Sequence record: NC_061440.1
Strand: one strand, 5' to 3'
DNA: 64,000 nt
Of this stretch, positions 12,267 through 31,799 are shown piece by piece. Within the stretch, counting starts at the first letter, position 1. Every line of letters begins with the position of its first letter. The position numbers and the translations under genes were made by a program. Below the pieces are notes generated by a model. It saw only the letters and a program-made list of their open reading frames with translations, did no database searches and was not told the origin of the DNA.

Positions 12267-13037
12267 ATGAGCAACGTTGATAAAACAATGCCACAAGGTC
12301 GCTGGGAATTTAATGAGCCAGTTGCTGCTGTCTTCGATAACATGTTGCAAAACTCCATTCCTTCGTATGACCGTATGCGCGACCTGACCTATCGTCTTGG
12401 TCGCCAGTTCGTAACTCCAGGTACGGCCATCGTTGATTTGGGCGCATCGCTCGGTCGCGCTATCGAACCATTCTGTGCTGAGTTCGGCGAGTACCATTAT
12501 ATTCATGCTGCTGACCGTCCCGAGCCAGATCGTGAAATCGGCAATCATTACTGCTGTTATGAAGTCGCACCGGCAATGCTTGAGCGTCTTCGTCAAAACG
12601 AAGTGCTGGTCAAGGCCAAAGCGAAAATCAGTAGTGAGTCGCTGGTTGAAGTCGATACTTTCCGCTTCGACGAGCAGGTTGAGTGCTCCCTGATTCTGAG
12701 TGTGCTGACTCTCCAGTTCACTCCTATCGAACATCGCCAACACATTCTGGAGAAAGTGTACGACTCTCTGGAGAAAGGCGGTGCTTTCATTCTGGTTGAG
12801 AAAGTGTTGGGTGACGACAACTTCCTTGACCGTTTGCTGGTAGACACCTACTACGGCATGAAGGGCGACAACGGTTATTCGCAAGAATCTATTGCGACTA
12901 AGCGCAAAGCTCTCGAAGGCGTACTGGTGCCTGTGAAAGCTGCATGGAACGAAGAACTGCTGCGTAAAGCAGGCTTCAACCGTGTGGAGTGTTTCTACCG
13001 CGACCTGAACTTTGCTGGATGGATCGCAGTCAAATAA
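12267..13037 (+). CDS. cmoA: CmoA-like carboxy-S-adenosylmethionine synthase
   Basis: Colinear with E. coli CmoA as recalled: W.F.E.VA.VF..M...S.P.Y, DLGASLG, TLQF, GG..IL.EK, NGYS, and KR..LE with the catalytic Arg equivalent retained. Confidence 0.88.
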   Translation: MSNVDKTMPQGRWEFNEPVAAVFDNMLQNSIPSYDRMRDLTYRLGRQFVTPGTAIVDLGASLGRAIEPFCAEFGEYHYIHAADRPEPDREIGNHYCCYEVAPAMLERLRQNEVLVKAKAKISSESLVEVDTFRFDEQVECSLILSVLTLQFTPIEHRQHILEKVYDSLEKGGAFILVEKVLGDDNFLDRLLVDTYYGMKGDNGYSQESIATKRKALEGVLVPVKAAWNEELLRKAGFNRVECFYRDLNFAGWIAVK

Positions 13038-13048
13038 GGTAAAACGAA

Positions 13049-14104
13049 ATGAGCGTAAGTGGTGATATTTATAACATCCCTCAACCGTTCGCCATGTATT
13101 GTGGCAACTGTGAAACTCGTGCTCAGGCAAAAGTTGCCTCAGGCACAATTGAATGGGCGTCAGAGAAAGTCTGCTGCGTTGTCGCCGACGATAACGGCCT
13201 GTTCCCTGATGTGCCTCACATCAACATTGCAAGCGTCCATGCTACAGATGCGCGTACTCTGGTAATCGGCTGTGCACCGTTCGGCGGTAAGATTGACGAG
13301 CACATGGACCGCACTATTCGCAGTGCTATCTATCGTGGTCTGAACGTTGCTGCTGCAATGCACAATCGTCTGGCAGACAATCCTGAATACGTTGCGCTGG
13401 CTGAACAGTACAATGTCAAGCTGTACGACTTCCGTCACCGTCCTGACGCGTACCCACTCGGTACTGGTGAGAAGCGCAAAGGCATTCGTCTGCTGACTGT
13501 CGGCACAGATAGTTCCTGCGGTAAAAAGTTCACGACGCTGACGCTACACCGTGTTCTGAAAAAGATTCACGACGACACGGTGTTCTGCTCAACTGGCCAG
13601 ACTGGTTTCCTGATCAGCAATTGCGGCATCAACAACGATACGCTGGTAGCTGACTTCCTTGCTGGTGCCGCTGAGTCCTTATCGCCTGACGGCCCTGCTG
13701 ATCGTATCTATCTGATCGAAGGCCAGGGCGCAATCACTCACCCAGCGTACACTGGCGGCAGCATGAGTCTGATTGCTGGCTCGCAGCCTGACTACTTCAT
13801 CATGTGTCATGCGTGGGGACGTAAGAATCAGCTCGGTGTTAAACGCGCACCTGACCTTGCTTTCGAACTGAAGGCTAATCTGGATGCAGCAGCCATTCAC
13901 GGTCTTACTCCTAAGTATCTGGGCATCAGTATCAACTTCTCCGAGAGCGGCCTGACCATCGAAGAACAAGACGCTGAGATGTGCGCTCTGGAAGACCTGT
14001 ACGACATTCCAGTGTTCGACCCGTCGCGTGATAGTATCGTCATCAAAGAGATGGCCCATCATCTCAAGACGACTGTAATATTCAGGAGCGAGTCGAATGG
14101 CTAA
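13049..14104 (+). CDS. DUF1611 family P-loop protein (DgcN-like)
   Basis: GLNVAAAMH, LLTVGTDSSCGKKFT, STGQTG, DFLAGAAE, IEGQGAITHPAY, GSQPD motifs typical of DUF1611. Confidence 0.85.
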   Translation: MSVSGDIYNIPQPFAMYCGNCETRAQAKVASGTIEWASEKVCCVVADDNGLFPDVPHINIASVHATDARTLVIGCAPFGGKIDEHMDRTIRSAIYRGLNVAAAMHNRLADNPEYVALAEQYNVKLYDFRHRPDAYPLGTGEKRKGIRLLTVGTDSSCGKKFTTLTLHRVLKKIHDDTVFCSTGQTGFLISNCGINNDTLVADFLAGAAESLSPDGPADRIYLIEGQGAITHPAYTGGSMSLIAGSQPDYFIMCHAWGRKNQLGVKRAPDLAFELKANLDAAAIHGLTPKYLGISINFSESGLTIEEQDAEMCALEDLYDIPVFDPSRDSIVIKEMAHHLKTTVIFRSESNG

Positions 14105-14966
14105 ACATCCTCTTCGCAAGCTGTTTGAACAGCACGTAAAGAAAGAGGTCAAAGCCAAAGAAGTGGCCGTTCTGCTTTCGAGTGGCCTCGACGGTTTGGT
14201 TAGCGCACTCGCGGCGCATGATCTCGGCATCAAAGTTCACGCGTTCACGTTCCAGATGGGTGATGAACAGAGCTTCGATAGCAAACACGCTCGCATCGTC
14301 GCAGAGAAGATGGGATGGGAGTTCACTCTGGTTAAAGTGCCGACGTCTGACACTGCAATCGCTAAAGGGTGGAAACAACTCCATGCAAACTTCCGCTGCA
14401 TCAAAAAGCGTGATTATGAGTGTGCGTACCCTATGGTGTACTGCTACAAAGCGATCAAAGATGCTGGCCTGAAATACGTGCTTAGTGGTCTGGTGGCTGA
14501 CGGTTACTTCCTGTATAACCGTAACACGCACATCCAGAAAGTAAGCGGCCCTCACTCTATCGCTGAAAAGTATCACGCGTACCGCACCGAATACTTCCGA
14601 CCGTGGATCAAAAGCGGTAAGAAGTCGCTCGGCGTTGACGGCTATAACCCGAGCGGTATGCTGCAACACGAATTGCTGTGTGACCACTTCGGCCTTGTTC
14701 ACGTTAACCCGTGGATGCAGCCGAAAGTATTTGATTACTTCATCAAGTACACATGGCAAGAGCTAAACATGCCCAAGCAGAAAATGCCAATAACAACGGC
14801 TTGGGCAGATCACATCGCAGTTGTTGGGCATCGTCCACATCGCGGCTATCAAACAGAAGCTGGAGTGCCTGCGCACTTCGAACGCTTACTGGATAATCCT
14901 GAGATCAACTTCAACGGCCGCAAGCGCATCATGGACGTGGCCCGCGATTGGTCAACGAGGACTTAA
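14097..14966 (+). CDS. asparagine-synthetase-like ATP-dependent amide ligase (no glutaminase domain)
   Basis: PP-loop VLLSSGLDG, SGLVADGYF (cf. SG.GADE.F), C-terminal VNPW...V and K.P motifs. Confidence 0.78.
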   Translation: MAKHPLRKLFEQHVKKEVKAKEVAVLLSSGLDGLVSALAAHDLGIKVHAFTFQMGDEQSFDSKHARIVAEKMGWEFTLVKVPTSDTAIAKGWKQLHANFRCIKKRDYECAYPMVYCYKAIKDAGLKYVLSGLVADGYFLYNRNTHIQKVSGPHSIAEKYHAYRTEYFRPWIKSGKKSLGVDGYNPSGMLQHELLCDHFGLVHVNPWMQPKVFDYFIKYTWQELNMPKQKMPITTAWADHIAVVGHRPHRGYQTEAGVPAHFERLLDNPEINFNGRKRIMDVARDWSTRT

Positions 14967-14967
14967 T

Positions 14968-15582
14968 ATGTTTGTACACATCATTGACGGTGGTATTGGT
15001 GGGTCTTATGTTGCTCACCAGTTAATGGAGGCTGGGTTTAAATGTCGCGTTCACTCTCCAAACAACAATCGTGTTCGGGCAGTACATGCGCCGTACCCTT
15101 CGCTTTCTATGGGTCACACTGAACAGGAAATTGAAAAGCATATCGGTAACGTGCTCGGTACGTTTCGCGGTATCTTCCTGATCAGTAGCTACGTGGGTTC
15201 GTTGATTGCAAATCAGATGATTGACCAGTGCGGCCAAAGCGGCAACATCATCACCTGTGACGATCTCAAATGTGGTTCAATACCTGTTGTTGCTTCATCC
15301 ATTTCTGTAAACGTCTATAAGAAGCAAAGACAACTGGCACGTATCTCGCATCGCCTGAAACACTTCGACATTGACCACGAGTTCATTGTCGCGGATAAGG
15401 CTGTGCGTTTTGCTGCTGGTTCGGAGTACGATGAGCACGATGCTCGAAAGGAGTTTAACAACAACGCCAAATTCCTTTCGAGTCCGTCAATGATTGTTGC
15501 TGCACACAAACTCGGTGTGAAGAACAGTATGTACCATAACTATGCGGGACTGGTGCGCGAGTTCCTTGAGAGGCGCCAGTAG
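14968..15582 (+). CDS. hypothetical protein, weak glutamate racemase (MurI)-like N-terminus
   Basis: IIDGGIGG..V (cf. FDSGVGG), APY..S..EQEI, LISSYVGS (cf. IACNTAS); catalytic Cys appears absent. Confidence 0.4.
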   Translation: MFVHIIDGGIGGSYVAHQLMEAGFKCRVHSPNNNRVRAVHAPYPSLSMGHTEQEIEKHIGNVLGTFRGIFLISSYVGSLIANQMIDQCGQSGNIITCDDLKCGSIPVVASSISVNVYKKQRQLARISHRLKHFDIDHEFIVADKAVRFAAGSEYDEHDARKEFNNNAKFLSSPSMIVAAHKLGVKNSMYHNYAGLVREFLERRQ

Positions 15583-15600
15583 CAGTAACGCGAGGGCACG

Positions 15601-15864
15601 ATGATTAATCGCTTTCAATTGAAGAAAGTTCCGACGCTCGAAGCGTGTCAATGGAACGGGGAGAACGTTGAGGAGATGGAGAAGTTCCTCAACGGTCATG
15701 GTCATGTTGTTGGGCGTTATGTCCAGATTGGTGTGCTCGATGAATATCGCAAGCCGTCTATTGCTAACGTGTCTGTAGGCAACTACGCAGTTAAGCATGA
15801 AGACGGTCGGTTCGATGCGATGACAGCAAGCGAACTGATGGACAAATACGTTCTGGCGGATTGA
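15601..15864 (+). CDS. hypothetical protein (conserved phage type, AxQW.GEN motif)
   Basis: GAGGG RBS; EACQWNGEN. Confidence 0.7.
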   Translation: MINRFQLKKVPTLEACQWNGENVEEMEKFLNGHGHVVGRYVQIGVLDEYRKPSIANVSVGNYAVKHEDGRFDAMTASELMDKYVLAD

Positions 15865-15871
15865 GGGCATA

Positions 15872-16327
15872 ATGAATCTGTTTTCTATTTTAAAGCAACA
15901 GGTAAAGAAAGCGCTGTCCACCGAAGCGAATCACGAACCAGAGATTCGTGCGTTGTTCGACTGGCGCTACTCTGTTGAGATCAAAGGCCAGATGTACATT
16001 GTTGGTAAGACTGGAGCAAACACTTGCTTCTATGTCGAGCCTGGTACTGACGAGCCGATTGCGTGTTACCCTGATGCGCTGCTGGAGAAGATTGATCAGT
16101 GGGGCGGAAGCAAGTACGTGACGTATGCCATTTACTTCAAGCGTTTCGAAAGCCCTGTCGCTGAGAATATCAAAGACCTGGAGAAAGCGCTGAAAGGCAA
16201 ACCGAAGTCGTACAAGAAAGGCTACTTCATCTGTGGCGTGACGCCGAAAGGTAAGCGTGTGAAACTCTATCGCTTGCAGCAAGGTCTGTCTGGTATGCAG
16301 TGGGTAGCTGTCGAACCTAAATCGTAA
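15872..16327 (+). CDS. hypothetical protein
   Basis: GAGGG RBS, ORF in operon. Confidence 0.7.
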   Translation: MNLFSILKQQVKKALSTEANHEPEIRALFDWRYSVEIKGQMYIVGKTGANTCFYVEPGTDEPIACYPDALLEKIDQWGGSKYVTYAIYFKRFESPVAENIKDLEKALKGKPKSYKKGYFICGVTPKGKRVKLYRLQQGLSGMQWVAVEPKS

Positions 16328-16357
16328 CAGCACGGCCTGTCCGTGTGAGGAGCAAAT

Positions 16358-16645
16358 ATGATTGACGACATTATTATTGGTCACATCTATCAGTCATCGA
16401 ATGGTCATCCATATAAAGTGGAAGGCCGCGCCGAACACGGGCAAAACCCAGAAGACAAGTGGGTACAACTCCATAACCTGACTCAAACTCCTTTGTATGC
16501 CAAAGGCCATAAGTTCAGTATGCGAGAGTCCGTGTTCAAGGAAGTTTTCTCTGTGTATACAGAAGGAGAGTACCATGAACACAACGTTAAGGCATCATCT
16601 GAAATGCCGCCACTTCGATCCTTCATTCTACCATTGTTGGCTTAG
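16358..16645 (+). CDS. DUF1653-like hypothetical protein
   Basis: GHIYQSSNGHPYKVEGRAEH motif; GAGGAG RBS. Confidence 0.55.
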   Translation: MIDDIIIGHIYQSSNGHPYKVEGRAEHGQNPEDKWVQLHNLTQTPLYAKGHKFSMRESVFKEVFSVYTEGEYHEHNVKASSEMPPLRSFILPLLA

Positions 16646-17088
16646 CGATACGCAAATGACCGTGCCGCTGTTTGGCTTTGATCGAGCAATGCGTGGTCTA
16701 CAGGTCTACACACCAGATGCACCAAAGCACGATAAGAATCCGAAAGCGTGTCGCTACTTCACGCGAGCGTTCGGTGGCAAGCAGTTGGTGTGGGGATCGG
16801 AAATTAAACCTGAACGGGTCGACCGTCTTCTTAACTGAGTCTGTCTTCAAGGCATGTGCGCTACATCGTCTTGGACTCAATGCTTGGTCCGTTCTCGGGT
16901 CTAATGTGAGTGAGCATCTGTATCACCAGCTTCGACTTCTTGGTCTACGTTTCGTCTGTCTTGGTGATAACGATAAAGCAGGACTGGAGTTTAGTCAGAC
17001 GTTCGGACTAGGCGCTGTCAGTGCGGACCTCGATGAGATGACCGATGAGCAGTTGCTTGATTTAACTTTACCCTTCGTAAGGAAATAG
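16575..17088 (+). pseudogene. small TOPRIM (primase-like) gene interrupted by a +1 frameshift near 16800-16804
   Basis: The frame from ATG 16575 reads ...RYFTR...VWGSE. The next frame continues LNLNGSTVFLTESVFKA...LGS...CLGDNDKAG (TOPRIM E and DxD). Removing one A fuses them. Confidence 0.72.
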
Positions 17089-17090
17089 AA

Positions 17091-17519
17091 ATGTCACGCG
17101 AAGTTATCGTCCGTATCTTAGGCCCTGTTGGTGTTGGCAAGTCTGCTGTGTACGCAACTCTGGTCAAAGCGCTGACTCAAATCGGTGTTGACGTCAAACA
17201 TGCCGATGAGAAAGCGTGGAAGTCTCTGGAGAACGCAGGCGAAGTTGAGCTGTCTACCGAAACGCTGAACGAACTCACACCTGTTGTGACGTTTGAAGAA
17301 GCTGGTATTCGCACTGATGCGTCCGCAAGCCAGAACTCTATCATACAGTTCTTTGCTTATGCGCATCTTCCGCCGCACCTGCAAGCTGTGAGCAAACCGT
17401 TCGCTCTGTTGGCCCAAGAGATGGACCAGAACCTTCCACAAGGTCCTGAGAAGTCTGCTGGTCTGCGCAAGCTGCTTGAAGCGAAAGACTGCATGGTTCG
17501 CCAGCTCGTTTCCAAATGA
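17091..17519 (+). CDS. P-loop domain fused to a conserved helical-hairpin domain (Acb2/Tad1-like)
   Basis: GPVGVGKS; C-terminal FFAYAHLP...LP.GPEKSAGLRKLLEAKD..VR. Confidence 0.55.
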   Translation: MSREVIVRILGPVGVGKSAVYATLVKALTQIGVDVKHADEKAWKSLENAGEVELSTETLNELTPVVTFEEAGIRTDASASQNSIIQFFAYAHLPPHLQAVSKPFALLAQEMDQNLPQGPEKSAGLRKLLEAKDCMVRQLVSK

Positions 17520-17839
17520 GTCTCGATCTCTTAGTGCCGCCTATCGGTCTGGAGCGCATTGAGTATCGTAACTACAACTACGACAATGTTAGCCTCAACA
17601 TTTTGAACATCATTAGCGTGGTGCCGAGCGCATTCAAGTCATATCCTGATAATGAAGGCACTCCGTCTATTGCATTCGAAATGCGCGGGCGAGAGAAGCC
17701 TGTCCACTGGATTATCCCTAAAGGGAAGTACGGTGCGAACGCTACGGCGTTGCGGGACAGACTGCTCCATCGTTTGCAGACAGGTGGCTATTCACATTTG
17801 GTGACTGCTGACGAACTGATCGCTGACTTACAGAAATAA
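17516..17839 (+). CDS. hypothetical protein
   Basis: ATGA coupling, followed by a terminator. Confidence 0.65.
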   Translation: MSLDLLVPPIGLERIEYRNYNYDNVSLNILNIISVVPSAFKSYPDNEGTPSIAFEMRGREKPVHWIIPKGKYGANATALRDRLLHRLQTGGYSHLVTADELIADLQK

Positions 17840-17842
17840 CCC

Positions 17843-17870
17843 AAGGGTGGCCATTAGGCTGCCCTTTTCT
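17843..17870 (+). terminator. rho-independent terminator
   Basis: aagggtggcc-atta-ggctgccctt followed by T-run. Confidence 0.8.
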
Positions 17871-17993
17871 GATCTTAGACAACTAAAACAAGCCCATAAG
17901 GACTGAATAGAACCGTGCGTAAAGCGTATAAAACCATGTGTAGGCAGCGTAGAAACACCACCTTTTTCTTGAGCAGTGGGAAGCGCTTAAAAA

Positions 17994-18002
17994 CTGTAAA
18001 TA
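17994..18002 (+). promoter_or_regulatory. phage promoter-like motif CTGTAAATA upstream of the adenine MTase
   Basis: The same 9-mer occurs at 7811, 10463, 25446, 33921, 37894 and 42866, each upstream of a + strand gene start. Confidence 0.65.
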
Positions 18003-18020
18003 CTGATAAAGGAGAGAAAA

Positions 18021-18863
18021 ATGACAGTAATCAGCCCAATCCGATATCAGGGCAATAAGCGAAGCCTTATCCCGATTATTCTTGAGCACACGCCTTCTGT
18101 GCAGGACTGCCCTCGCATGGTGGACGTGTTTGGTGGTAGCGCTACTGTTTGTGCGAACATGCCGCAGAAGTTTCGCGTTTATAACGAACTGAGTCCTCAG
18201 GTGTACGATATCGTTAAGATGTTAGTCGAACAGGACCCGAAGAAAACTCTTGGTCAGGTCAAGCGACTGGTCAAACATTGGTGCCTGACTAACAGCAACG
18301 AAGCGAACTACGATGCGTTTCGTACCGTCGTCCAGAAGAAGCGCACTGCTATCTTGCATTATGTTGCACATCGCCACGCTCATTCGAACATGCTGCGATT
18401 CAACCAGCAAGGTGTGTACAATGTAGGCTTTGGTGATCGTGGTCTGATTGGTAAGTTCGATGAACTGGAACACGAACTCACTACATTCCACAAACATATG
18501 CAGGGCGTTCACCTGACGAACATGAAGTACGGCAAGCTGCTTGGTCGCTTAGGCCACCAGCTAGACTGCAACACGTTCTGCTACTTCGACCCTCCGTACC
18601 TGGCGAGTGGTGCGATGCAGTACGGTAAGTGGACAGAGCAGAATGAACGCAACCTGCTTACGACTCTGGAGCAGTTGAATCGTCGCGGTGTTCCCTGGAT
18701 GTTGAGCAACGTTATCGAGCACAGAGAGTTCTCAAACGATCTGCTAAAGCGTTGGTTAAAGAAACATGCGACAACCGTGCTCTATCCAAACAAAAGCTAT
18801 GCGATGAACAATGGCCAGAGCGGCTCGCATAGCACGATTGAAATTCTGGCAATGAACTATTGA
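18021..18863 (+). CDS. Dam-like (D12 class) DNA adenine methyltransferase
   Basis: RYQGNK, DVFGGS (motif I), YFDPPY (motif IV), N-terminal layout of Dam/T4Dam. Confidence 0.9.
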   Translation: MTVISPIRYQGNKRSLIPIILEHTPSVQDCPRMVDVFGGSATVCANMPQKFRVYNELSPQVYDIVKMLVEQDPKKTLGQVKRLVKHWCLTNSNEANYDAFRTVVQKKRTAILHYVAHRHAHSNMLRFNQQGVYNVGFGDRGLIGKFDELEHELTTFHKHMQGVHLTNMKYGKLLGRLGHQLDCNTFCYFDPPYLASGAMQYGKWTEQNERNLLTTLEQLNRRGVPWMLSNVIEHREFSNDLLKRWLKKHATTVLYPNKSYAMNNGQSGSHSTIEILAMNY

Positions 18864-18870
18864 GGCTGCT

Positions 18871-19176
18871 ATGACTCTGCGTACAAACCAAAAACTTATC
18901 TTCATCTTAAAGGCTCTAACGCGCAAGTTAGAGGAGGTCAACGCTCTCGCCTGGTCAATATCGAAAGATCCCAAAGACACTTGCGGAGCTATTGATATGT
19001 CGGCTATATCTGACTACTCAGATGAAGGTCTGATCAAAGAAATTGAAATGCGCGCCAATCAAATCGAAGAACGTAAGCGATACATTGCGAGTCTTCATGG
19101 TGGCGCTGATGGCCACTGCCGTGCTGCGAATAATCAAGCCGATGCAATCTATCAACGTTATTGTGGGAAAAGATAA
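18871..19176 (+). CDS. hypothetical protein
   Basis: GAGG RBS, in operon. Confidence 0.6.
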   Translation: MTLRTNQKLIFILKALTRKLEEVNALAWSISKDPKDTCGAIDMSAISDYSDEGLIKEIEMRANQIEERKRYIASLHGGADGHCRAANNQADAIYQRYCGKR

Positions 19177-20343: not shown

Positions 20344-20731
20344 CGCCAGTGATGCAGAAGCGCGGGCGTACTATCAGAAACAACATGAACGCGCCGAAGC
20401 CACCATGCGAGAAATCTGGGCGTTACGTGGCTGGACGATTCGTTGGGAGTGGCACAACGGCATCTGCGATGATTGTGAGTTCCTGTTCGACGAAACAGGC
20501 AAGCAGTTGTGTCCGTACCACGATGCCATTCCGCAAGAAAGTCAGGTGGCGTACAATCTTGAGAAGCATCGCCTCAATGTGACGTACACCAAGAAATCTG
20601 TAAAATTGATTAACAAGCAAGACCCAAATCCAGTTGAAGGTAAAGCTGACACGTTACGCCAGGCTTATATCAATTGGCTGTTGGCCCTTGAGAAACAAAA
20701 AGCTGAGGAACAAAAGTGCGCCACGACTTAA
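20321..20731 (+). CDS. hypothetical protein with Cys cluster
   Basis: CDDC...CPYH. Confidence 0.6.
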   Translation: MYLPLGDNASDAEARAYYQKQHERAEATMREIWALRGWTIRWEWHNGICDDCEFLFDETGKQLCPYHDAIPQESQVAYNLEKHRLNVTYTKKSVKLINKQDPNPVEGKADTLRQAYINWLLALEKQKAEEQKCATT

Positions 20732-21237
20732 CCGAACTCCCTATTTCCGTAGAGCAAGCAGAGCACATCATGGCCAGTGTGTTTACTCTGGCTGGTGCTT
20801 CTAAATCGAAGCGTCGTGCGACTGCTGCAATGCTCATTCACTTCCACGACGGCTTCCCTACGATTATCAGTAGCGGTGTCAACGGTACTATGCCTGGCGA
20901 AAGCAACGTCATGGAAACTCCTGACTTGACGCTCTCACTTAACACTGTTATCCATGCAGAGGTGAACTGCCTCAATCGCATGGAAGAATACAGTCTGTGG
21001 GCAAACGAACAGGACATTCTGTTCTGTACCGATTCGCCGTGTCCGAACTGTCTGGCTGATCTCGAAGCCGAAGGCGTGAAGACCGTTGTGTATGCGCGTG
21101 AGTATCGACTAACTGATCATCTGGACGCATCTTCGATTAAGATGTTCTGTCTGGATATGAAGTCCGTTGAGCACCGTATGCTTCGCGGTATCGAGCGCAT
21201 GAACGAAGTTATCGCAACAACACCAGCGTCTGAATAA
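20716..21237 (+). CDS. dCMP deaminase family protein
   Basis: SGVNG, HAEVNCL and SPCPNC zinc motifs. Confidence 0.88.
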   Translation: MRHDLTELPISVEQAEHIMASVFTLAGASKSKRRATAAMLIHFHDGFPTIISSGVNGTMPGESNVMETPDLTLSLNTVIHAEVNCLNRMEEYSLWANEQDILFCTDSPCPNCLADLEAEGVKTVVYAREYRLTDHLDASSIKMFCLDMKSVEHRMLRGIERMNEVIATTPASE

Positions 21238-23176: not shown

Positions 23177-23179
23177 TTG

Positions 23180-25600: not shown

Positions 25601-25904
25601 CCTGCTGGTAAAGATGTTCGGCCAGAACAAGCCATTCATCGTCGTGCGCCGTGACGCTATCGTGGAGAACGAAAAGCGTTTCGGTGATCGCGTTTACTTC
25701 TCTAATGGCGTTAACACCGTCACTGTGCCAAACATTCAAGGGCTTGACCTGGGTGATAAGCTCTACATTGCAGAAGACGGCGATGTGTATGAGTGGCATC
25801 CTCACTTCGAGCGTCCTTACGAAGCAGTATCGAACAACCAGACAGAAGCTCTGGCGTTTGGTCTGCATCCCATTGTCTTCCACACCGACACACGGAACAG
25901 CTAA
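25560..25904 (+). CDS. hypothetical protein
   Basis: ORF coupled to thymidylate synthase by TAATG. Confidence 0.6.
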   Translation: MPTPVILLKQQTRDLLVKMFGQNKPFIVVRRDAIVENEKRFGDRVYFSNGVNTVTVPNIQGLDLGDKLYIAEDGDVYEWHPHFERPYEAVSNNQTEALAFGLHPIVFHTDTRNS

Positions 25905-27001
25905 TGTCACAACCACTTGATTTACGAAACCCGAACCACTACGAACTGTACTCTCTCCATAGCGTGGACGAGCAGTATATCAACCTGTGCGATGCAATCA
26001 TTGCTACTGGTACGCAAGAGTCCGATGCTGGTCGCACCGACGATACGTGGACGACTCTGATTGGCGTTGGTTTCCAGTTGCAGAACACGCACATTGCTTT
26101 CCCTGCACTGCTGTCCGCACGTAAGAACTGGAGCGCAGCCGTCGATGAGATGTGCTGGATGGCTCGCGGTGAAACGAACATCAACACTCTCGGCTCTAAG
26201 ATCTGGGACGAGTGGGCAGATGAAAGCGGTGAGTGCGGTCCAATCTACGGCGAGATGTGGCGTCGTTGGCCTGACATTAAAGCGTTCTTCGACTACACGC
26301 AGCCTATGGCGTCTTGCCCTACTGCCGATGTTATTCGTGTGCGTGACGAAATTCTGCGTATGCGTCAGGACGGCTACATCGAAACGCAACTGACTGACGG
26401 TCGCATCCTGTTTGAAGGTGAGATTGACCAGTTCGCTAACGCTCTGTATCACATCGAAAACCGTTCGCGTTCTCGCCGCATTCGTGTGCAGGGTTTCAAC
26501 CCAAGCTATGTGAACATGCAGGGTCTTCCTCCGTGTCACACTGAGTTTGAGTTCAACGTAACGAAGTCCACCAAGTACGAACAGGCGCAGGCCGATGCTC
26601 GCGGTCAGACGGTAGCGCAGGACAGTCTGCATATCACTGTCACCATGCGCAGCAACGACTGCCTGCTGGGGCGTCCTTTCAACATCATCGGCTACAGTGC
26701 AATGCACCAACTGATTGCGAAGTGGGCTGGCTTGAACGTTGGTGGCTTTACGCTGAATACGACGAACACCCACCTGTACGATCATCACCGTGAAGCATAC
26801 GCTAAACAGCGTGAGCAATGGATGACGTTGCGTGAACGTATGCAAACAACTGGCGAGCCTGTGAAATATCCTGTGCTCGAAATCTCCGATGATGTTATCG
26901 GTCTGACAGCTAAAGAACTGCTGGACAACGTTAACATCGACTGGTTCGAGCTGGTGGACTACAGCCCGATGCCAGCAGTAAAAGGACGTGTGACCAAATG
27001 A
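25904..27001 (+). CDS. thyA: thymidylate synthase
   Basis: GPIYGEMWR, RSRR, LPPCH, MRSND..LG.PFN (dUMP-specifying Asn), HLYDHH. Confidence 0.93.
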   Translation: MSQPLDLRNPNHYELYSLHSVDEQYINLCDAIIATGTQESDAGRTDDTWTTLIGVGFQLQNTHIAFPALLSARKNWSAAVDEMCWMARGETNINTLGSKIWDEWADESGECGPIYGEMWRRWPDIKAFFDYTQPMASCPTADVIRVRDEILRMRQDGYIETQLTDGRILFEGEIDQFANALYHIENRSRSRRIRVQGFNPSYVNMQGLPPCHTEFEFNVTKSTKYEQAQADARGQTVAQDSLHITVTMRSNDCLLGRPFNIIGYSAMHQLIAKWAGLNVGGFTLNTTNTHLYDHHREAYAKQREQWMTLRERMQTTGEPVKYPVLEISDDVIGLTAKELLDNVNIDWFELVDYSPMPAVKGRVTK

Positions 27002-27651
27002 ACGTGAATAACATTTTGCTGATCGAACGTGTCAGCTCCTATATGTACGTCGGCTTTGCAGAAAACATACCTGACATTCCTCGTCGTGGTGTTGAGAAGT
27101 TCGACGTTCTGATTCCTGACGGACGTGATGGAACCAATGAACCGATTCTTCAAATGACGGCGCGTTGTATCTACCATCTGCCGCACAACTGTTTCCTGAT
27201 CAGCATTGCAGAAGGCACTGAGGGGCACGAGTACCCAGCCCAGATGAAGTCTCACTGCAAGTACAACATGGAACTGTTCAAGCGTTCCTCTCATGGCCGC
27301 GAACAGATTGCACTCAAGCAAATTCTGAATGAACTGCATGACGCCGAAGTGCAGCACCCGGACTGGCCAGAAGAATGTATTCACGCTGCATCAATCGTTA
27401 CCGAAGAAGCTGGTGAGTTGCTGCGCGACTGTGCAACCTTCGAAGAAAACGGCGACGACCGCCTGATTCTTAACATGCTGGGTGAGGCCACTCAGGTCGG
27501 TGCAATGGCCGTTCGCTTCATGAAGAACCTGCCGTTCAGCCAAAAGCGTACTATCCCCAACAAAGCGCTGCGCTCAATCCTTGACTCTGACATGACACCA
27601 GAGCAACAACTGGTTGAAGTGCGCCGACTAATGAATGACGGAGTTCGTTAA
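26998..27651 (+). CDS. two-domain protein with MazG-like NTP pyrophosphohydrolase C-terminal domain
   Basis: IVTEEAGELL...EATQVGAMAVRF. Confidence 0.7.
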   Translation: MNVNNILLIERVSSYMYVGFAENIPDIPRRGVEKFDVLIPDGRDGTNEPILQMTARCIYHLPHNCFLISIAEGTEGHEYPAQMKSHCKYNMELFKRSSHGREQIALKQILNELHDAEVQHPDWPEECIHAASIVTEEAGELLRDCATFEENGDDRLILNMLGEATQVGAMAVRFMKNLPFSQKRTIPNKALRSILDSDMTPEQQLVEVRRLMNDGVR

Positions 27652-28541
27652 TGCGTTTACTTAGTTATGGTGCCTGTGGCGGTGAACCCTTTCGCCGTCT
27701 GATTGTAGAAGACAACGGCCTGCTTGAAATCGGTGTGCATCCAGAAATCAAAGCATTCGGTTGCGTCTTCACAAACGTTAACGTTGGTCGTCGCATTGAT
27801 GGCACTGCTGAACTCGATCTGCCTGATGCGAAAGACTGGTCTATCGAAATGGCGAACTACTTCCTGTCGCCTGAATACAAGCAGTGGGTAGGCGGTCATA
27901 CGCCACGTATCGAAACGATGCTGGATGCGCACGTCATCAAAGGCAAGCTGCCGACACTGGCTCAGGACTTCGATGCGTTCTATGCTGACCTGCAACAAAA
28001 GATCAACGCACTCAATCTGCCTGACATTGTGTTTGAACACAGCACGATTAAGCAGACGAACCTGAACCAACAGTTCGACGTGTGGATGCTGTACAAGTAC
28101 AACTTGATGCTTGACGGCAAGATCTCTGTGACGCGTTCGAATCTCGGTGAGCTGGTCTTTCAAGAAGACTTCATCTCCGCGAAAGGTACGATGTGGTGGC
28201 TGCGTGAGCACAACAAGCAACTAATGGAGCTGGCCGCGAAGCACGACATGTTGGCTGCATTCATTACGTTCGGTGAATCACATCGCAGAGAGCGTGAGTT
28301 CTTCTACTCGTTTATCACGCACGAAGGCGCCACGTCACATCGGCCTGTTGATCCAGCAGAGTTCATGCACCTGTCTGTTCATGGTCAGTTCCCAGAGCTG
28401 GTCATCATTGATGAAGGTGAAGGGTATCGTCTGACTGTTAACTATGGGCAATACTTCCCTAAAGCGTATCTCGATCTCCAGGCTGCGACCAACATCACTG
28501 TCGGCAGCAACTACGCGCTTAACCTCTTGCGCTTTATCTGA
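27651..28541 (+). CDS. hypothetical protein
   Basis: TAATG coupling, 296 aa. Confidence 0.7.
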   Translation: MRLLSYGACGGEPFRRLIVEDNGLLEIGVHPEIKAFGCVFTNVNVGRRIDGTAELDLPDAKDWSIEMANYFLSPEYKQWVGGHTPRIETMLDAHVIKGKLPTLAQDFDAFYADLQQKINALNLPDIVFEHSTIKQTNLNQQFDVWMLYKYNLMLDGKISVTRSNLGELVFQEDFISAKGTMWWLREHNKQLMELAAKHDMLAAFITFGESHRREREFFYSFITHEGATSHRPVDPAEFMHLSVHGQFPELVIIDEGEGYRLTVNYGQYFPKAYLDLQAATNITVGSNYALNLLRFI

Positions 28542-28547
28542 CGGTGC

Positions 28548-28590
28548 CGAGTCTCCCTCAGTAATTTAAGTTTCTACAAAGGGAGACTCG
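28548..28590 (+). promoter_or_regulatory. 11-bp inverted repeat sequestering the downstream RBS
   Basis: cgagtctccct (28548-28558) pairs with agggagactcg (28580-28590); the loop contains TAATTT. Confidence 0.6.
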
Positions 28591-28592
28591 CC

Positions 28593-28928
28593 ATGCAATA
28601 CGATAAGACGAAAGACTATCAGCCGTTCAAATACCTGGGTGCGCCTAAGCTGCCTAACGTGGGCTTCATCGCCAGCACTGTAACACTCGTCGAAAATGAC
28701 GTGAACATCGGTGAAGACGAATGCGAGTTTGTATTTACGGTAGAGCAGATGAACTCGCTAGACCGAGGAACGATGACCTTCCGCGCGAAAGATGCAGGTG
28801 GAGGCATCAGTATTAAGAAATGCTCCGTCTCTGGATTGAAAATGGTAATTAAGCTGGAACGACGCGTAGTGCAGTTCGGCAAAGTTCAAGTCGAGTGGGC
28901 TACGACCAGCCGTAAGTATCTTTATTAA
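28593..28928 (+). CDS. hypothetical protein
   Basis: GGGAG RBS, 111 aa. Confidence 0.65.
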   Translation: MQYDKTKDYQPFKYLGAPKLPNVGFIASTVTLVENDVNIGEDECEFVFTVEQMNSLDRGTMTFRAKDAGGGISIKKCSVSGLKMVIKLERRVVQFGKVQVEWATTSRKYLY

Positions 28929-28969
28929 TCTGTAAAGACAGAGAAAGAGCAACCACAAGAGAAACGATA

Positions 28970-29668
28970 ATGGCAAAAATTGCTAAAACAAAGGAAGGGA
29001 AAAAGAAAAGCGCGATGAAGTTTGACTTGAAAACGCTCAAGACTTCACAACTGAAAGGCGCTGATTACAACCCTCGTTTCATTACAGACAGCCGCCTGAA
29101 AGCACTCGAAAGTTCTTTGGGTAGCTTTGGCGATCTGTCTGGCATCGTCTTCAACAACAGTGTCAAAAGCGGCGTATTGATCTCTGGCCACCAGCGTCTG
29201 AAATCCATCGACGGCTGGAAGACTCGCATTGAGATTCAGAAAGCCTCCGACCAACACGGTACCGTAGCTCTGGGTTACATCCACGCTACGCACCCGAAGA
29301 AAGCCGAGAAGGTTATCAGTATCCCGTTGCGTATCGTTAACTGGACTGATAAGAAAGCCGAGTACGCTGCGAACATCGCGGCGAACGCGCACGGCGGTGA
29401 GTTCGATAACAAGAAACTCGCCAAGCTGGTGGAGAAGCTGGACTTGACCACCATCAAGCCTCAGTTGCTGGGTCTTGACCCACTTGAGATTCGCGGCCTT
29501 CAACAAAAGCTGAAAGGCCAGGCTGCGGTTGTAGCTCAAGAGCGTGTCGGTAAAACTACAGGCCAGATGAACGGCAGTAGCGGTGCGTTCAAAGAGTATG
29601 GTACGGACGAAGTAGGTGAGAGTCTGAACTGCACCTGCCCGCGCTGTGGATTTAAGTTCGAGGGATAA
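28970..29668 (+). CDS. ParB/Srx-like N-terminal domain protein with C-terminal Zn ribbon
   Basis: LKGADYNPR, SL..FG, ISGHQRL, AANIAAN..GGEFD, CPRCGF. Confidence 0.82.
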   Translation: MAKIAKTKEGKKKSAMKFDLKTLKTSQLKGADYNPRFITDSRLKALESSLGSFGDLSGIVFNNSVKSGVLISGHQRLKSIDGWKTRIEIQKASDQHGTVALGYIHATHPKKAEKVISIPLRIVNWTDKKAEYAANIAANAHGGEFDNKKLAKLVEKLDLTTIKPQLLGLDPLEIRGLQQKLKGQAAVVAQERVGKTTGQMNGSSGAFKEYGTDEVGESLNCTCPRCGFKFEG

Positions 29669-29669
29669 T

Positions 29670-31799
29670 ATGATCATCAAGCCGCCTACTATGAAGGAAA
29701 TCAACAAGCTGGATAAACCCTGGCGTGGTATGAGTTTCTTCGCAGGTTGCGGTGGATCTTCTACCGGTCACAAGATGGCCGGTATCAACATCCTGTTGAG
29801 TAACGAGTTCGTGGATAGTGCCCGCGAGTCTTACGAAGCAAACCATCCGACTACTAAAGTGCTGCCGCATGATATTCGTCGTCTGGACCCGAGCAAGCTC
29901 ATGCGTTATTGTGGCTTGGCGAAAGGCGAACTGGATTTACTTGACGGCAGTCCTCCGTGCTTTACCGAAGACACCATCATTCATACAGCAGACGGCATGA
30001 AGTTCATCTCGGACATGAATGTCGGCGATCAAGCAATGACCTCTGTTGGTCGTTACTTCCCTGTGTACGATACTATGGTTCGTCCGTATGTCGGCACGAT
30101 GCACAAAATCGAAACTCTGCTGGGCGCAAACAACGCTACACCAGAGCATCCGTTCTTTGTCAGACGCAGCATTCCTACTGGCGGCTACACTGACCCGTTC
30201 TGGTGTGATGCGAAAGACGTTCAGGAAGGTGACCTGTTAGGTAGCCCGCGCACTACGCCTGACATGGGACTCGACGTGTATCAGTCTCAACTCGATCAGC
30301 TGCCGAAGCAGATTGCAGAGTGGAGCACATTCCCTGAGTTCTGGTGGATGGTTGGACACTGGTGTGATCGCGGTTCGATTGAAACAGTGAGCGGTGTTGA
30401 AGTCGTTAGCTTTGAGTCGCACTCAAGCCTCGAAAACGCAATGATTGAGCAGGCGTTTGACGCGCTGAAAATCAGCAGCCTGAACCGTATCGACACGATG
30501 ACAGCACAACGCAAAACGTTCCGTATCGTTATGGACGCAGAGCTGGTGCAGTTCTTACGCCGATTCGTCAGTCAGGGCAACAACAAGTTCTCTCGTCGTC
30601 TGCCTGCGATTGTCTTCCACCTGACAGTCGAATTGAAGCAACAGTTCATTCTCGGTTGTGCCGGTCATGACTATGTGACTGGTATGGGAACAGGCTTGGC
30701 GATCACCTCAGATAGCCGTCGCTTCCTGATTGAGCTGAACTACCTGTGCTGTTCTGCATTCAACCGACCGCTGTTCGATGGTCTGACTTGGGGCGACGTT
30801 TACTTCGGCAGCCCGATGACTCCGCGTGATCGTAACAGTGTTAAGCCTCTCATTGGCTTCCTGTTCCTGCAGGACGAACACAACTTCTTCCACGAGTTCG
30901 ATGACGCTGACCCGCATTTGTGGGTAGAAGTGATTGAGAACCTCGCGTATCAGGCGACATGTGACGTGTACAACTTCTCCGTTGAGACGGATGAAACATA
31001 CGTTGCAAACAGCATGGTCGTTCACAACTGCAAGGGCTTCTCTACTGCAGGTGTGAAAGAAGAAGGCTGGGGCAAGGAAGTTAAATACAGCGATAACAAG
31101 TATCAGCAGGTTGATGACCTGTTCGATCAGTATTGTCGTATGCTGGAAGGCATGAAGCCGAAGGTGTTCACTGCGGAAAACGTGAGTGGCCTTGTGAAGG
31201 GCGCATCGAAAGGTTACTTCCTTGAAATCATGAAGGAGTTCGACCGAATAGGTTATTACGTTCGAGCACCTATGCTTAATGCTGCGTGGCTTGGTGTGCC
31301 TCAATCGCGTGAGCGTATCATCTTTATGGGTGTACGCAAAGACGTTGCACACGCACTGGGTCACAAGACGGCTGCGGCCGCTGTGCCGAATGTTGTTCCG
31401 TGTGACAGTATGGCATTCCTTGCCGATGCTCTGCCGCATATTCTGCGATACAAGTCCACGAAGAAAGATATCATCACCTATCTTCCTGCGATGAACGGAC
31501 CTATGCCAACGATCACTGCTGCCGACGCCATTGCGTATGAGACCGCGCGATTCTCATCGGCTGGCTTCGTCGAGGACAACAAAGGTCATCGCCGTAAACT
31601 GACCATTGACGAACTCAAAGTGATATCGGGTTTGCCCTCAGACTACAAACTGAAAGGCAAATTCGAAGAACAGTGGGAACGTCTTGGTCGTATCTGTGTG
31701 CCTGCAATGACACACGCAGCGGCTAAAGCGCTCATCGAACACGTCCTGATTCCTTACGCGAAGAAACGTAAGAAGAAGCCAGGCGATATCTTTAAGTAA
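29670..31799 (+). CDS. C5-cytosine DNA methyltransferase homolog, intein-interrupted; predicted carboxymethyltransferase (CmoX-like)
   Basis: Motifs I FAGCGG, IV GSPPC, VI ENV, VIII PQSRER, IX RKLTIDE; motif X reads QWERLGRICVP instead of Q.GN.V. Confidence 0.9.
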   Translation: MIIKPPTMKEINKLDKPWRGMSFFAGCGGSSTGHKMAGINILLSNEFVDSARESYEANHPTTKVLPHDIRRLDPSKLMRYCGLAKGELDLLDGSPPCFTEDTIIHTADGMKFISDMNVGDQAMTSVGRYFPVYDTMVRPYVGTMHKIETLLGANNATPEHPFFVRRSIPTGGYTDPFWCDAKDVQEGDLLGSPRTTPDMGLDVYQSQLDQLPKQIAEWSTFPEFWWMVGHWCDRGSIETVSGVEVVSFESHSSLENAMIEQAFDALKISSLNRIDTMTAQRKTFRIVMDAELVQFLRRFVSQGNNKFSRRLPAIVFHLTVELKQQFILGCAGHDYVTGMGTGLAITSDSRRFLIELNYLCCSAFNRPLFDGLTWGDVYFGSPMTPRDRNSVKPLIGFLFLQDEHNFFHEFDDADPHLWVEVIENLAYQATCDVYNFSVETDETYVANSMVVHNCKGFSTAGVKEEGWGKEVKYSDNKYQQVDDLFDQYCRMLEGMKPKVFTAENVSGLVKGASKGYFLEIMKEFDRIGYYVRAPMLNAAWLGVPQSRERIIFMGVRKDVAHALGHKTAAAAVPNVVPCDSMAFLADALPHILRYKSTKKDIITYLPAMNGPMPTITAADAIAYETARFSSAGFVEDNKGHRRKLTIDELKVISGLPSDYKLKGKFEEQWERLGRICVPAMTHAAAKALIEHVLIPYAKKRKKKPGDIFK
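29958..31028 (+). mobile_element. intein (357 aa) with degenerate LAGLIDADG endonuclease, in the catalytic PC motif
   Basis: SPP/CFTEDT start, block B NATPEHPF, ends VVHN followed by Cys(+1), the catalytic cysteine. Confidence 0.93.

Follow-up and report, generated by a model that had tools for sequence, protein, structure and literature searches.

The closest described system is that of Synechococcus phage S-B43, in which CmoA, CmoX and CmoY make 5-glycyl-carboxymethylcytosine (5gcxmC; Yang et al., Nat Commun 2025, PMC12783734). Wild-type SpCmoX uses carboxy-SAM as its sole cofactor and its R350N mutant uses neither cofactor, and a ParBc-CmoX association is reported for many contigs (PMC12783734). 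The same paper cites an engineered enzyme with a related activity, M.MpeI N374K/R, a laboratory-made, CpG-specific carboxymethyltransferase.

We analysed the initial 64 kb of the 265-kb genome of Erwinia phage pEa_SNUABM_22, a jumbo phage (the window; NC_061440.1, positions 1-64000, identical in every letter and with coordinates unchanged). An initial annotation had invoked the CmoA/CmoX/CmoY pathway and named six genes for it; that pathway is real (PMC12783734), all six genes are present (Table 1), and the window proteins are homologs that retain the diagnostic residues. They include the ParB-like gene and the C5-methyltransferase homolog with a motif-X Arg that were placed 14 kb from the other four. 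Those four had been called an operon, a status deduced solely from how tightly the genes are packed and from their overlapping codons; scans for promoters and terminators gave matches at chance level. A Cmo-type system in this phage of an enterobacterium is real, and the Cmo core chemistry is likely. Because a carboxymethyl/amide kit occurs here with a conserved, undescribed fourth member (a DUF1611 protein), the phage DNA probably carries a base so far uncharacterised.

Table 1. Features of the two gene groups in the window.
Feature	Length (aa)	Position	Strand	Basis or content
gp016, CmoA-like carboxy-SAM synthase	256	12267..13037	+	PDB, TIGR00740, SpCmoA matches
gp017, DUF1611 protein, phage-type subfamily related to D-glutamate N-acetyltransferase DgcN	351	13049..14104	+	Pfam, NF041892, 7XRJ
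gp018, CmoY-like ATP-dependent amide ligase	289	14097..14966	+	Pfam Asn_synthase, SpCmoY identity
gp019, orphan protein with predicted glutamate-racemase-like fold	204	14968..15582	+	AF2 and Foldseek
gp046, ParB-like protein	232	28970..29668	+	phrog_620, phrog_498; immediately upstream of CmoX (gp047)
gp047, CmoX-like DNA cytosine C5-carboxymethyltransferase precursor with intein	709	29670..31799	+	8YF3, Pfam
gp047 N-extein	96	29670..29957	+	motifs I-III, ends just before motif-IV catalytic Cys; 8YF3 residues 22-99
Intein in gp047	357	29958..31028	+	at motif-IV catalytic cysteine; sequence ends and Pfam
gp047 C-extein	256	31029..31799	+	catalytic Cys, motifs VI and VIII, target-recognition region, motif X with Arg; 8YF3 residues 108-219, 308-369

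Homologs of all three S-B43 enzymes are readily identified. The top solved relatives of gp016 are the E. coli and H. influenzae CmoA proteins (4GEK, E 5.5e-31; 4IWN; 1IM8). It is 30% identical to the assayed SpCmoA (E 7e-29) and matches TIGR00740 (E 9.6e-43) with 146.6 bits, under the curated NCBIfam equivalog cut-off of 193.3. A stand-alone asparagine-synthetase-type ligase, gp018 has by Pfam the synthetase (PP-loop) domain only (Asn_synthase, 5.5e-14) and no glutaminase domain, and the protein is 33% identical to the characterised SpCmoY over its full length (E 3e-49). The top PDB match of gp047 is the SpCmoX crystal structure (8YF3, E 1.4e-53, in three stretches), alongside Pfam DNA_methylase (1.8e-38). 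The protein retains the SPPC motif and an Arg aligned to R350, the carboxy-SAM-binding arginine of SpCmoX; the C-extein holds this motif-X Arg and an ENV motif. In M.MpeI N374K/R (cited in PMC12783734), a basic residue in place of the motif-X Asn likewise enables a C5-methyltransferase scaffold to use carboxy-SAM, but gp047 is natural and its target-recognition region differs. The ParBc-type neighbour known from many contigs (PMC12783734) is represented by gp046, which matches phrog_620 ('ParB-like partition protein', 1e-32) and phrog_498 (DNA methyltransferase N-terminal part, 8.6e-21) and no Pfam family at E <= 0.01. The same ParB-CmoX order occurs in L021 and PaBG.

Unlike its S-B43 counterpart, this CmoX carries an intein at the catalytic Cys, to which the word 'spliced' in the initial annotation corresponds. 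The intein ends are canonical (first Cys, last His-Asn, then Cys), and it matches Hint_2 and Intein_splicing, both under the gathering score. CmoX orthologs lacking an intein (L021, L022, L024, L029, SpCmoX and PaBG) are colinear over the junction. An intein sits at the same site in L028 and in the Erwinia, Dickeya and Yersinia clade (48, 2 and 1 matching records, respectively). Its ends are intact and its frame open in all matches listed (40 of 55 matching records), which argues for active splicing.

The genes also differ from those of S-B43 in lying in two groups 14 kb apart, yet these groups are present or absent together across related phages, the co-occurrence that the initial annotation had proposed to look for. 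Searches with CmoA, the ligase and CmoX each returned 48 Erwinia, 2 Dickeya and 1 Yersinia phage records, and six syntenic Dickeya records (JA11/JA29 type) lack all three (record search and PMC6143709 Table 5). The two clusters are contiguous in L021, PaBG and S-B43; L021 has ParB, CmoX, DUF1611, ligase and CmoA in a row.

Two genes have no counterpart in the S-B43 pathway, and neither the DUF1611 family nor a MurI-fold protein is mentioned in the text or available supplements of PMC12783734. Our literature search for studies of DNA modification in Alexandravirus yielded none. The first of these genes, gp017, has both DUF1611 domains (DUF1611_N, 4.3e-18; DUF1611 (DUF1611_C), 4.1e-45) and aligns end to end with the DgcN family NF041892 (E 2.2e-83) and with PDB 7XRJ (E 5.4e-51). 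Proteins of the gp017 type share 56 invariant columns with homologs from bacterial DgcN contexts, including the P-loop, but the gp017 score of 279.9 bits is far under the equivalog cut-off of 480. Phage and bacterial members separate in a rough NJ tree. Their partners differ as well. The bacterial homologs (35-38% identity) adjoin an enolase-type racemase, forming the canonical DgcN-DgcA pair, whereas the phage-type genes accompany the ligase, CmoX and CmoA and, in sibling cassettes, a PLP-type racemase.

Phage-type DUF1611 adjoins an Asn_synthase-type ligase in 10/10 non-cellular contexts examined (L002, L007/8, L009/10, L011, L021, L022/23, L024, L028, L029 and the Erwinia clade), and the order CmoX, DUF1611, ligase, CmoA is seen in L021, L022, L028 and L029. 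The end of gp017 and the start of gp018 share 8 nt, and the corresponding L021 genes overlap by 14 nt. In the 51 clade records, DUF1611 tracks the ligase subtype of gp018 without exception (34/34 vs 0/17); the subtype, at identities of at least 82%, and DUF1611 are found in one and the same set of 34 phage records. More broadly, two ligase subfamilies match two phage DUF1611 clades. Judged by its conserved gene order with the ligase, CmoX and CmoA, gp017 is a member of the Cmo pathway. This relative of a D-amino-acid-type acyltransferase is a conserved, previously undescribed fourth member of Cmo kits.

The second extra gene, gp019, had been called MurI-like, a description that holds only for its predicted fold; no sequence or profile method relates the protein to racemases. 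It matches no sequence family, and a set of 1.84 billion proteins clustered at 50% identity contains just 5 clusters of it. An AF2 model reached pLDDT 89.7 (alignment A3; confident models only 2/5). Each of the best 10 Foldseek matches in the PDB is a glutamate racemase (E 1.7e-5 to 2.4e-3; prob 1.0, query-normalised TM 0.52-0.65, ~10% identity), ahead of everything else. However, gp019 is 50-60 residues shorter than MurI. MurI catalysis depends on two cysteines, and the invariant columns of the gp019 family contain none (alignment A3), so the predicted protein is probably not a two-thiol racemase. The gene immediately follows the ligase; only Y3-type phages have two genes in between. The initial annotation had taken both extra genes as signs of a more elaborate base; this fits DUF1611 well, given its conserved synteny in 10/10 phage-like contexts, and gp019 only tentatively, as it is clade-restricted with a racemase fold and no conserved cysteine. 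Sibling phages exchange further accessory genes at the locus: an alanine-racemase-like gene, a gene weakly resembling glycosyltransferases and one for a 2OG oxygenase. In L003, L007, L009 and L011 an alanine-racemase-like gene adjoins DUF1611. The alanine-racemase-like neighbours and the predicted fold of gp019 give such loci a D-amino-acid theme.

We consider it probable that the two gene groups in the window together code for a complete Cmo-type pathway of DNA cytosine hypermodification, with gp017 as an integral fourth enzyme and an adduct beyond 5gcxmC. By homology, gp016 would convert SAM and prephenate to carboxy-SAM. In keeping with this step, some related clusters include genes for prephenate supply, namely DAHP synthase (L009) and chorismate mutase (L024). 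Excision of the intein would restore the motif-IV catalytic cysteine of gp047, which, with its diagnostic residues in place and probably assisted by gp046, would move the carboxymethyl group onto C5 of phage DNA cytosines to give 5cxmC. As its identity to SpCmoY suggests, gp018 would adenylate the 5cxmC carboxylate and couple it through an amide bond to an amine, which is most likely an alpha-amino acid. DgcN transfers an acetyl group from acetyl-CoA to the alpha-amine of D-glutamate. In our preferred reading, gp017, a phage-specific offshoot of that family, would acylate a free D-configured amine on the appended group; our second choice is that gp017 and the ligase together make the amide step specific for a D-amino acid. 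A simple alpha-amino-acid amide has no free amine, so acylation by gp017 would need a di-amino substrate or a non-canonical role. As a clade-specific accessory, gp019 would probably bind or process the amino-acid moiety. The end product would be a cytosine adduct unlike, and larger than, that of S-B43, with a D-amino acid as our leading guess for its content, and would presumably shield the DNA from host nucleases.

It is very improbable that these genes leave DNA without hypermodification, with gp016 serving tRNA cmo5U as in bacteria and gp047 being an ordinary 5-methylcytosine methyltransferase or inactivated by its intein. The RefSeq label of gp016, 'tRNA methyltransferase', its score under the CmoA equivalog cut-off and the interrupted catalytic motif of gp047 would fit such roles. 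Against them, Arg replaces the motif-X Asn of methyl-transferring enzymes in gp047, SpCmoX is its top structural relative, CmoA, ligase and CmoX share one presence/absence pattern, no tRNA genes were found in the 64-kb window, and the state of the intein in the clade records listed argues for splicing. We also regard it as unlikely that, with the same core pathway, gp017 and gp019 act on free amino acids rather than DNA, whether to manage pools such as those of D-Glu or D-Ala or to provide or shield the amine substrate of the ligase, and that the base is a plain 5cxmC amino-acid amide comparable to 5gcxmC. Free amino acids are the substrates of alanine racemases and MurI, and related clusters contain clearly metabolic, prephenate-supply genes (DAHP synthase in L009, chorismate mutase in L024). 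The characterised DgcN acts on free D-glutamate, according to its NCBIfam name and to EC 2.3.1.312 as cited in PMC11747546, and SpCmoY alone is enough for amide formation (PMC12783734). Yet a free amino acid that had been N-acetylated would no longer offer the ligase its amine. DUF1611 also lies between CmoX and the ligase, its codons overlap, and it co-diverges with the ligase subfamilies, all of which is more in keeping with a partner enzyme than with one that adjusts pools.

Partnership could also take the form of a two-protein amide synthase, in which gp018 would adenylate 5cxmC and gp017, through an acyl-acceptor site inherited from DgcN, would bring a D-amino acid of the D-Glu or D-Ala type to the activated carboxymethyl group. 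The product, an N-(cytosin-5-yl-acetyl)-D-amino acid, is formally an N-acetyl-D-amino acid with a substituent on its methyl group, and the CmoY product, an N-substituted-acetyl amino acid, belongs to the product class of N-acetyl-D-glutamate. The gene overlaps, the perfect co-variation and co-divergence of DUF1611 and ligase, and the adjoining racemase-type genes are all consistent with such an arrangement. We nonetheless find it distinctly unlikely: SpCmoY works without a partner (PMC12783734), and the P-loop common to the gp017 type and its CoA-dependent bacterial homologs argues that CoA-thioester chemistry is retained in gp017. We know of no precedent for a DUF1611 protein with an acyl-adenylate donor.

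The proposed route also resembles thymidine hypermodification from 5-hydroxymethyl-dU, for which amino-acid-bearing and N-acetylated thymines were reportedly described by Lee et al. in 2018 and 2022 and in older work on SP10 and phiW-14. Both would place a handle on pyrimidine C5 before tailoring enzymes act, and terminal N-acetylation and amino-acid appendages have precedent in the thymidine systems. The enzyme families differ. So do the handles: in the thymidine systems it is a hydroxymethyl on uracil activated by phosphorylation, whereas in pEa_SNUABM_22 it would be a carboxylate that cytosine receives from carboxy-SAM after replication.

The bacteriophage pEa_SNUABM_22 (NC_061440.1/MZ443785.1) has a genome of 265,146 bp, belongs to the genus Alexandravirus and infects Erwinia amylovora; in a megablast comparison the window is 100% identical to it, with unchanged numbering. 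All six genes named in the initial annotation are present as described, judged by coordinates and by profile and structure matches. That annotation invoked a cyanophage CmoA/CmoX/CmoY pathway for DNA cytosine modification, which matches the work of Yang et al. (Nat Commun 2025, December; PMC12783734). In Synechococcus phage S-B43, SpCmoA makes carboxy-SAM, SpCmoX produces 5-carboxymethylcytosine (5cxmC) at GC sites, and SpCmoY uses ATP to ligate glycine; the glycine amide is the single product described and is present in virion DNA (PMC12783734). The [M+H]+ values given there are 286.1 for 5cxmdC and 343.1 for the glycine amide. SpCmoX residue R350 touches the carboxymethyl group, with the wild-type enzyme using carboxy-SAM only and R350N using neither cofactor (PMC12783734). 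The same study lists 5,615 candidate CmoX proteins, which in many cases are encoded beside CmoA, a ligase and ParBc, and predicts other amine substrates or further amide modifications without identifying them (PMC12783734). The core system is thus already published. Its main text and the supplements searched make no mention of Erwinia, Dickeya, PaBG, DUF1611 or racemases. Literature searches on DgcN, on Alexandravirus, and on how Erwinia jumbo phages modify their DNA or resist restriction returned nothing on DNA chemistry. New here are DUF1611 as a conserved fourth component, racemase-type accessories, cassette polymorphism and an intein on the catalytic cysteine.

Coordinates of the Cmo-related features in the window
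Feature	Position	Strand	Description
gp016	12267-13037	+	CmoA-like
gp017	13049-14104	+	both DUF1611 domains
gp018	14097-14966	+	Asn_synthase, synthetase part only
gp046	28970-29668	+	ParB-like (PHROGs)
gp047	29670-31799	+	C5-methyltransferase homolog, CmoX-like
intein	29958-31028	+	357-aa insert between two prolines and cysteine of motif IV

The best solved relatives of gp016 are CmoA structures (4GEK, E 5.5e-31; 4IWN, 3e-28; 1IM8, 1.9e-26), well ahead of other methyltransferases, and it shares 30% identity with SpCmoA (E 7e-29). CmoA models are its top NCBIfam matches by a wide margin, with scores below the curated cut-offs for both TIGR00740, the carboxy-SAM synthase model (E 9.6e-43; 146.6 bits, cut-off 193.3), and NF011995 (112.5 bits, cut-off 285). 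The 289-aa gp018 aligns to Asn_synthase over residues 6-138 only and lacks the glutaminase domain in Pfam; it returned no match in a PDB search and is 33% identical to SpCmoY over its full length (276 aligned columns, E 3e-49). Members of its ligase subfamily share 56-76% identity with each other and ~33% with SpCmoY. Among ParB-type profiles, gp046 matches phrog_620 (E 1e-32) and phrog_723 (5e-4), with no Pfam match at E <= 0.01 and no PDB match at E <= 1. For gp047, the best solved relative is the SpCmoX structure itself (8YF3, E 1.4e-53). Counting chain residues in the HMMER alignment to 8YF3 places an Arg of gp047 opposite SpCmoX R350, the motif-X Asn site of methyltransferases, and Arg also occupies this position in phage PaBG and in four related viral loci (L021, L024, L028 and L029). 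The homologies, diagnostic residues, intein position and conserved gene order are established by sequence comparison; the interpretation in the initial annotation, that this phage carboxymethylates its DNA cytosines and amidates them, is supported in silico.

The length of gp047 (709 aa) is due to its 357-aa insert, whose termini are canonical: Cys is its first residue, His-Asn its last two, and another Cys comes directly after it. Both Pfam matches to the insert fall below gathering score (Intein_splicing, 27.6 bits, cut-off 35.8; Hint_2, 22.2 bits, cut-off 28.4). We read the junction from insert-less relatives rather than by joining the flanking host-protein parts (exteins). On L021, a 216-kb viral contig, the stretch matching the N-extein meets the one matching the C-extein at 9288/9289, and in six intein-less homologs (L021, L022, L024, L029, SpCmoX and PaBG) the SPPC catalytic motif runs directly into the start of the gp047 C-extein. 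In the precursor, the cysteine of SPPC is intein residue 1, and the cysteine after the intein would restore SPPC post-splicing. Since the intein-less homologs are continuous across the site, the residue following the intein is the catalytic cysteine, so that gp047 would be inactive until spliced. Searching with the intein matched 48 Erwinia records, 2 Dickeya and 1 Yersinia, at the same site among the matches listed (40 of 55). Intein identity spans 64-100% among the best 40 of 55 matches, and the intein diverges faster than the exteins. An intein also sits at this site, before the catalytic Cys, in a 766-aa CmoX-like gene of a metagenomic phage (L028:2688-4988) in which DUF1611 shares just 43% identity with gp017. 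The shared position suggests a recurrent homing site or an old insertion. Placed on the catalytic Cys of an enzyme that modifies DNA, and recurring in this unrelated phage, the intein is an unusual regulatory or selfish-element feature.

The initial annotation treated the two gene clusters, 14 kb apart, as a single split system and proposed a co-occurrence check. We queried 50,697 phage records with CmoA, the ligase and the CmoX C-extein (tblastn). Clade counts were identical for all three queries, at 48 Erwinia, 2 Dickeya (AD1) and 1 Yersinia. With the portal protein as query, six further Dickeya records match at ~70% identity, JA11 and JA29 among them, and the gene has the same place on the map; CmoA, ligase and CmoX are all absent from those six. 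In agreement, a published genome comparison shows that AD1 and Y3 share a methyltransferase, an asparagine synthase, a cytosine methyltransferase and a 'repressor', all missing in JA11 (PMC6143709, Table 5). The Cmo genes are contiguous in L021, PaBG and S-B43. Together, co-distribution and contiguity elsewhere indicate that the two clusters are one system and that the split is a local rearrangement.

We found that the DUF1611 gene is tied to this pathway. Both domains of gp017, DUF1611_N and the DUF1611 P-loop domain, exceed Pfam gathering scores. Over its entire length the protein aligns with the 'N-acetyltransferase DgcN' model NF041892 (E 2.2e-83; 279.9 bits, below the cut-off of 480) and with PDB 7XRJ (E 5.4e-51). 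The phage database contains DUF1611 in just 34 records, which all belong to this clade and are exactly those with a ligase sharing at least 82% identity with gp018. In the remaining 17 clade records, the ligase shares 22-31% identity with gp018 and DUF1611 is missing. A 5.8-billion-protein collection yielded gp017 homologs along an identity gradient from 98% to 28%. We examined the gene neighbourhoods of ten of these homologs and added L021 from an IMG/VR scan. In a rough NJ tree, phage DUF1611 proteins fall into two clades that coincide with two ligase subfamilies (identity 56-76% in subfamily I, 55-70% in subfamily II and 23-31% between them). The DUF1611 gene overlaps its downstream neighbour by 8 nt in gp017/gp018 and by 14 nt in L021. 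By these genomic criteria, DUF1611 is a conserved fourth component, tied to the Cmo pathway across many phage lineages.

Gene orders in related Cmo loci (L numbers) and in cassette types of sibling phages
Locus or type	Phage	Gene order
L002		four-gene array identical in order to that of the window
L007/8		DUF1611, alanine-racemase-like, ligase
L011		glycosyltransferase-like, DUF1611, alanine-racemase-like, ligase
L009/10		CmoA, 84 aa, 398 aa, DUF1611, racemase-like, ligase, DAHP synthase
L021		ParB, CmoX, DUF1611, ligase, CmoA
L022/23		CmoX, DUF1611, ligase, 167 aa, CmoA-like
L024		CmoX, 78 aa, chorismate mutase, CmoA-like, DUF1611, weak ligase
L028		intein-bearing CmoX, DUF1611, ligase, CmoA-like
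L029		CmoX, DUF1611, ligase, CmoA
type A	pEa_SNUABM_22 (window)	CmoA, DUF1611, ligase, gp019
type B	pEa_SNUABM_3	CmoA, 420 aa, DUF1611, alanine-racemase-like, ligase, gp019
type C	pEa_SNUABM_7	CmoA, 420 aa, DUF1611, ligase, 84 aa
type D	pEa_SNUABM_2	CmoA, other ligase, gp019
type E	Y3	CmoA, third ligase type, 49 aa, 2OG-Fe(II) oxygenase, gp019

In the interval from cmoA to the conserved genes downstream of it, sibling Erwinia jumbo phages carry at least five different sets of genes (L003:1501-7001, L004:1048-5262, L005:1142-4433 and L006:746-3050). The variable genes encode an alanine-racemase-like protein, a 420-aa protein, a 2OG-Fe(II) oxygenase and three ligase subtypes. The 420-aa protein has no Pfam or NCBIfam match; a weak GT-B hint (PDB E 0.31) and a 'faint' Glycos_transf_1 match in its L011 homolog make it tentatively glycosyltransferase-like. 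The pattern is as expected for a locus diversifying its chemical product. With at least five types in isolated, sequenced Erwinia and Dickeya phages, these cassettes form a natural comparison panel for relating gene to mass shift.

The protein encoded downstream of the ligase, gp019, is an orphan at the level of sequence. Even with E values up to 10 admitted, searching Pfam, NCBIfam, PHROGs and the PDB (by phmmer or hmmsearch) with gp019 or its alignments yielded chance matches only. At 90% identity the family forms 17 clusters. Among 1.84 billion representative proteins, an exhaustive profile search recovered just 5 clusters and no bridge to a known family, and hhalign found the gp019 family unrelated to the 203-aa protein that follows the PaBG ligase. 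An AF2 prediction from 18 close homologs was discarded (pLDDT 42). Adding four divergent members (alignment A3) raised pLDDT to 89.7 and pTM to 0.87, with models 3-5 reaching only 57-65. When this model was compared with the PDB by Foldseek, the ten best matches were all glutamate racemases (E 1.7e-5 to 2.4e-3, prob 1.0), with TM scores of 0.52-0.65 and ~10% identity. MurI uses two catalytic cysteines. The invariant columns of A3 are D7, L19, L63, R67, S74, S78, D86, G89, S91, D143, S172 and Y192, with no Cys among them. The MurI-like assignment made at first reading therefore holds for the predicted fold and fails for sequence profiles and the catalytic Cys pair, and we rejected gp019 as a canonical racemase because its family has no conserved cysteine. 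Going by their location after strands 69-72 and 168-170 of the model, S74 and S172 may stand at the MurI cysteine positions. Homologs of gp019 occur in 40 records, mostly directly 3' of ligases of several subtypes; in Y3-type phages two genes lie between ligase and gp019. Since gp019 is also found in phages without DUF1611, and is missing from the Snuvirus group and all metagenomic clusters, its distribution marks it as a clade-specific accessory independent of DUF1611.

Two alternative assignments of the core enzymes were rejected: a tRNA-modifying CmoA for gp016, which is co-distributed with CmoX, and an ordinary 5mC methyltransferase for gp047, which carries Arg at motif X. The main rival explanation concerns gp017, whose role could be purely metabolic. 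Two bacterial homologs on cellular contigs (P0072 and P0067, 35-38% identity) adjoin an enolase-superfamily MR_MLE gene, the known DgcN-DgcA arrangement, and lie outside the two phage clades in a rough NJ tree. The neighbours of gp017 are CmoA and the ligase, with no enolase-superfamily racemase (DgcA) adjacent. An alignment of DUF1611 proteins that includes those from DgcN contexts (A2) retains 56 invariant columns, among them the P-loop, which suggests that the phage members have kept the type of chemistry. Going by the NCBIfam name and the EC numbers quoted in PMC11747546, the only characterised activity of the family is transfer of acetyl from acetyl-CoA to the alpha-amine of D-glutamate. 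Because this activity is combined with racemase-type genes alongside the phage enzyme, we favour, by analogy, a D-configured amine as the acceptor of gp017.

In a pathway that includes gp017, carboxy-SAM would give 5cxmC, followed by an acyl-adenylate, an amide and a DUF1611-dependent step. A plain alpha-amino-acid amide has no free amine, which leaves two options for gp017. The appended group might bear a second amine as the target of acylation by gp017; among hypermodified thymidines, N-acetylation at the terminus has a precedent. Alternatively, gp017 might help the ligase to deliver a D-amino acid; cytosine would then be the substituent on the methyl group of what is formally an N-acetyl-D-amino acid. 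On a tentative reading, which we regard as less likely than not, DUF1611 would act with co-evolving ligases and phage-encoded racemase-type proteins to equip 5cxmC with either a D-amino acid or a D-configured amine that is N-acylated. We know of no D-amino-acid-bearing DNA base described so far. If the D-amine reading is true, near-identical Erwinia jumbo phages would each carry a chemically different cytosine adduct, set by swapped alanine-racemase-like, weakly glycosyltransferase-like, 2OG oxygenase and MurI-fold genes. The adjacent racemase-type genes link the Cmo pathway to D-amino-acid chemistry. In practical terms, new DNA bases matter for how phages evade restriction and CRISPR, for artefacts in sequencing and for enzymatic tools that label DNA.

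Two related phage Cmo clusters, distinct from the window, contain shikimate-pathway genes: a DAHP synthase (L009:10943-11806; TIGR00034, 180 bits against a cut-off of 173) and a chorismate mutase (L024:3622-4089; NF004925, E 2.5e-19). They fit the need of CmoA for its co-substrate prephenate, whose supply they plausibly boost.

Across 1-40 kb of the window every gene lies on the + strand and GC is flat at ~0.50. Promoter-like (sigma-70-type) and terminator-like sites in window:11000-18200 and 27500-33200 are no commoner than in shuffled sequence, with promoter-like sites fewer than in shuffled sequence over 27.5-33.2 kb. The whole window has no tRNA genes, and Pfam matches none of ten uncharacterised ORFs that lie between the two clusters or beyond them. 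Only PHROG families of unknown function, specific to such phages, match the Cmo-gene neighbours gp043 (26998-27651), gp020/gp021 (15601-16327) and gp015 (11456-12214); homologs of gp020 and gp021 lie downstream of the cassette in every sibling examined. A thymidylate synthase homolog (window:25904-27001) and an annotated dCMP deaminase (20716-21237), both ordinary pyrimidine-supply genes, are situated between the two Cmo clusters. The former passes TIGR03284, with its match split around an extra segment of ~50 residues. A Dam-family N6-adenine DNA methyltransferase is encoded by gp026 (window:18021-18863; TIGR00571, E 6.7e-30; 104.7 bits, just below the cut-off of 114.85), and Dam-type genes also occur near the clusters in L002, L011 and L022. 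Because gp026 is a Dam-family homolog, the phage DNA may bear a second, independent modification. Finally, Alcaligenes phage Afa-NA1 (PV550095.1:62473-65686) encodes a CmoA 60% identical to gp016 beside a portal 66% identical to that of the window. For a 78-kb record, so close a relation to these jumbo phages is unexpected; the record may be partial or represent a smaller relative.
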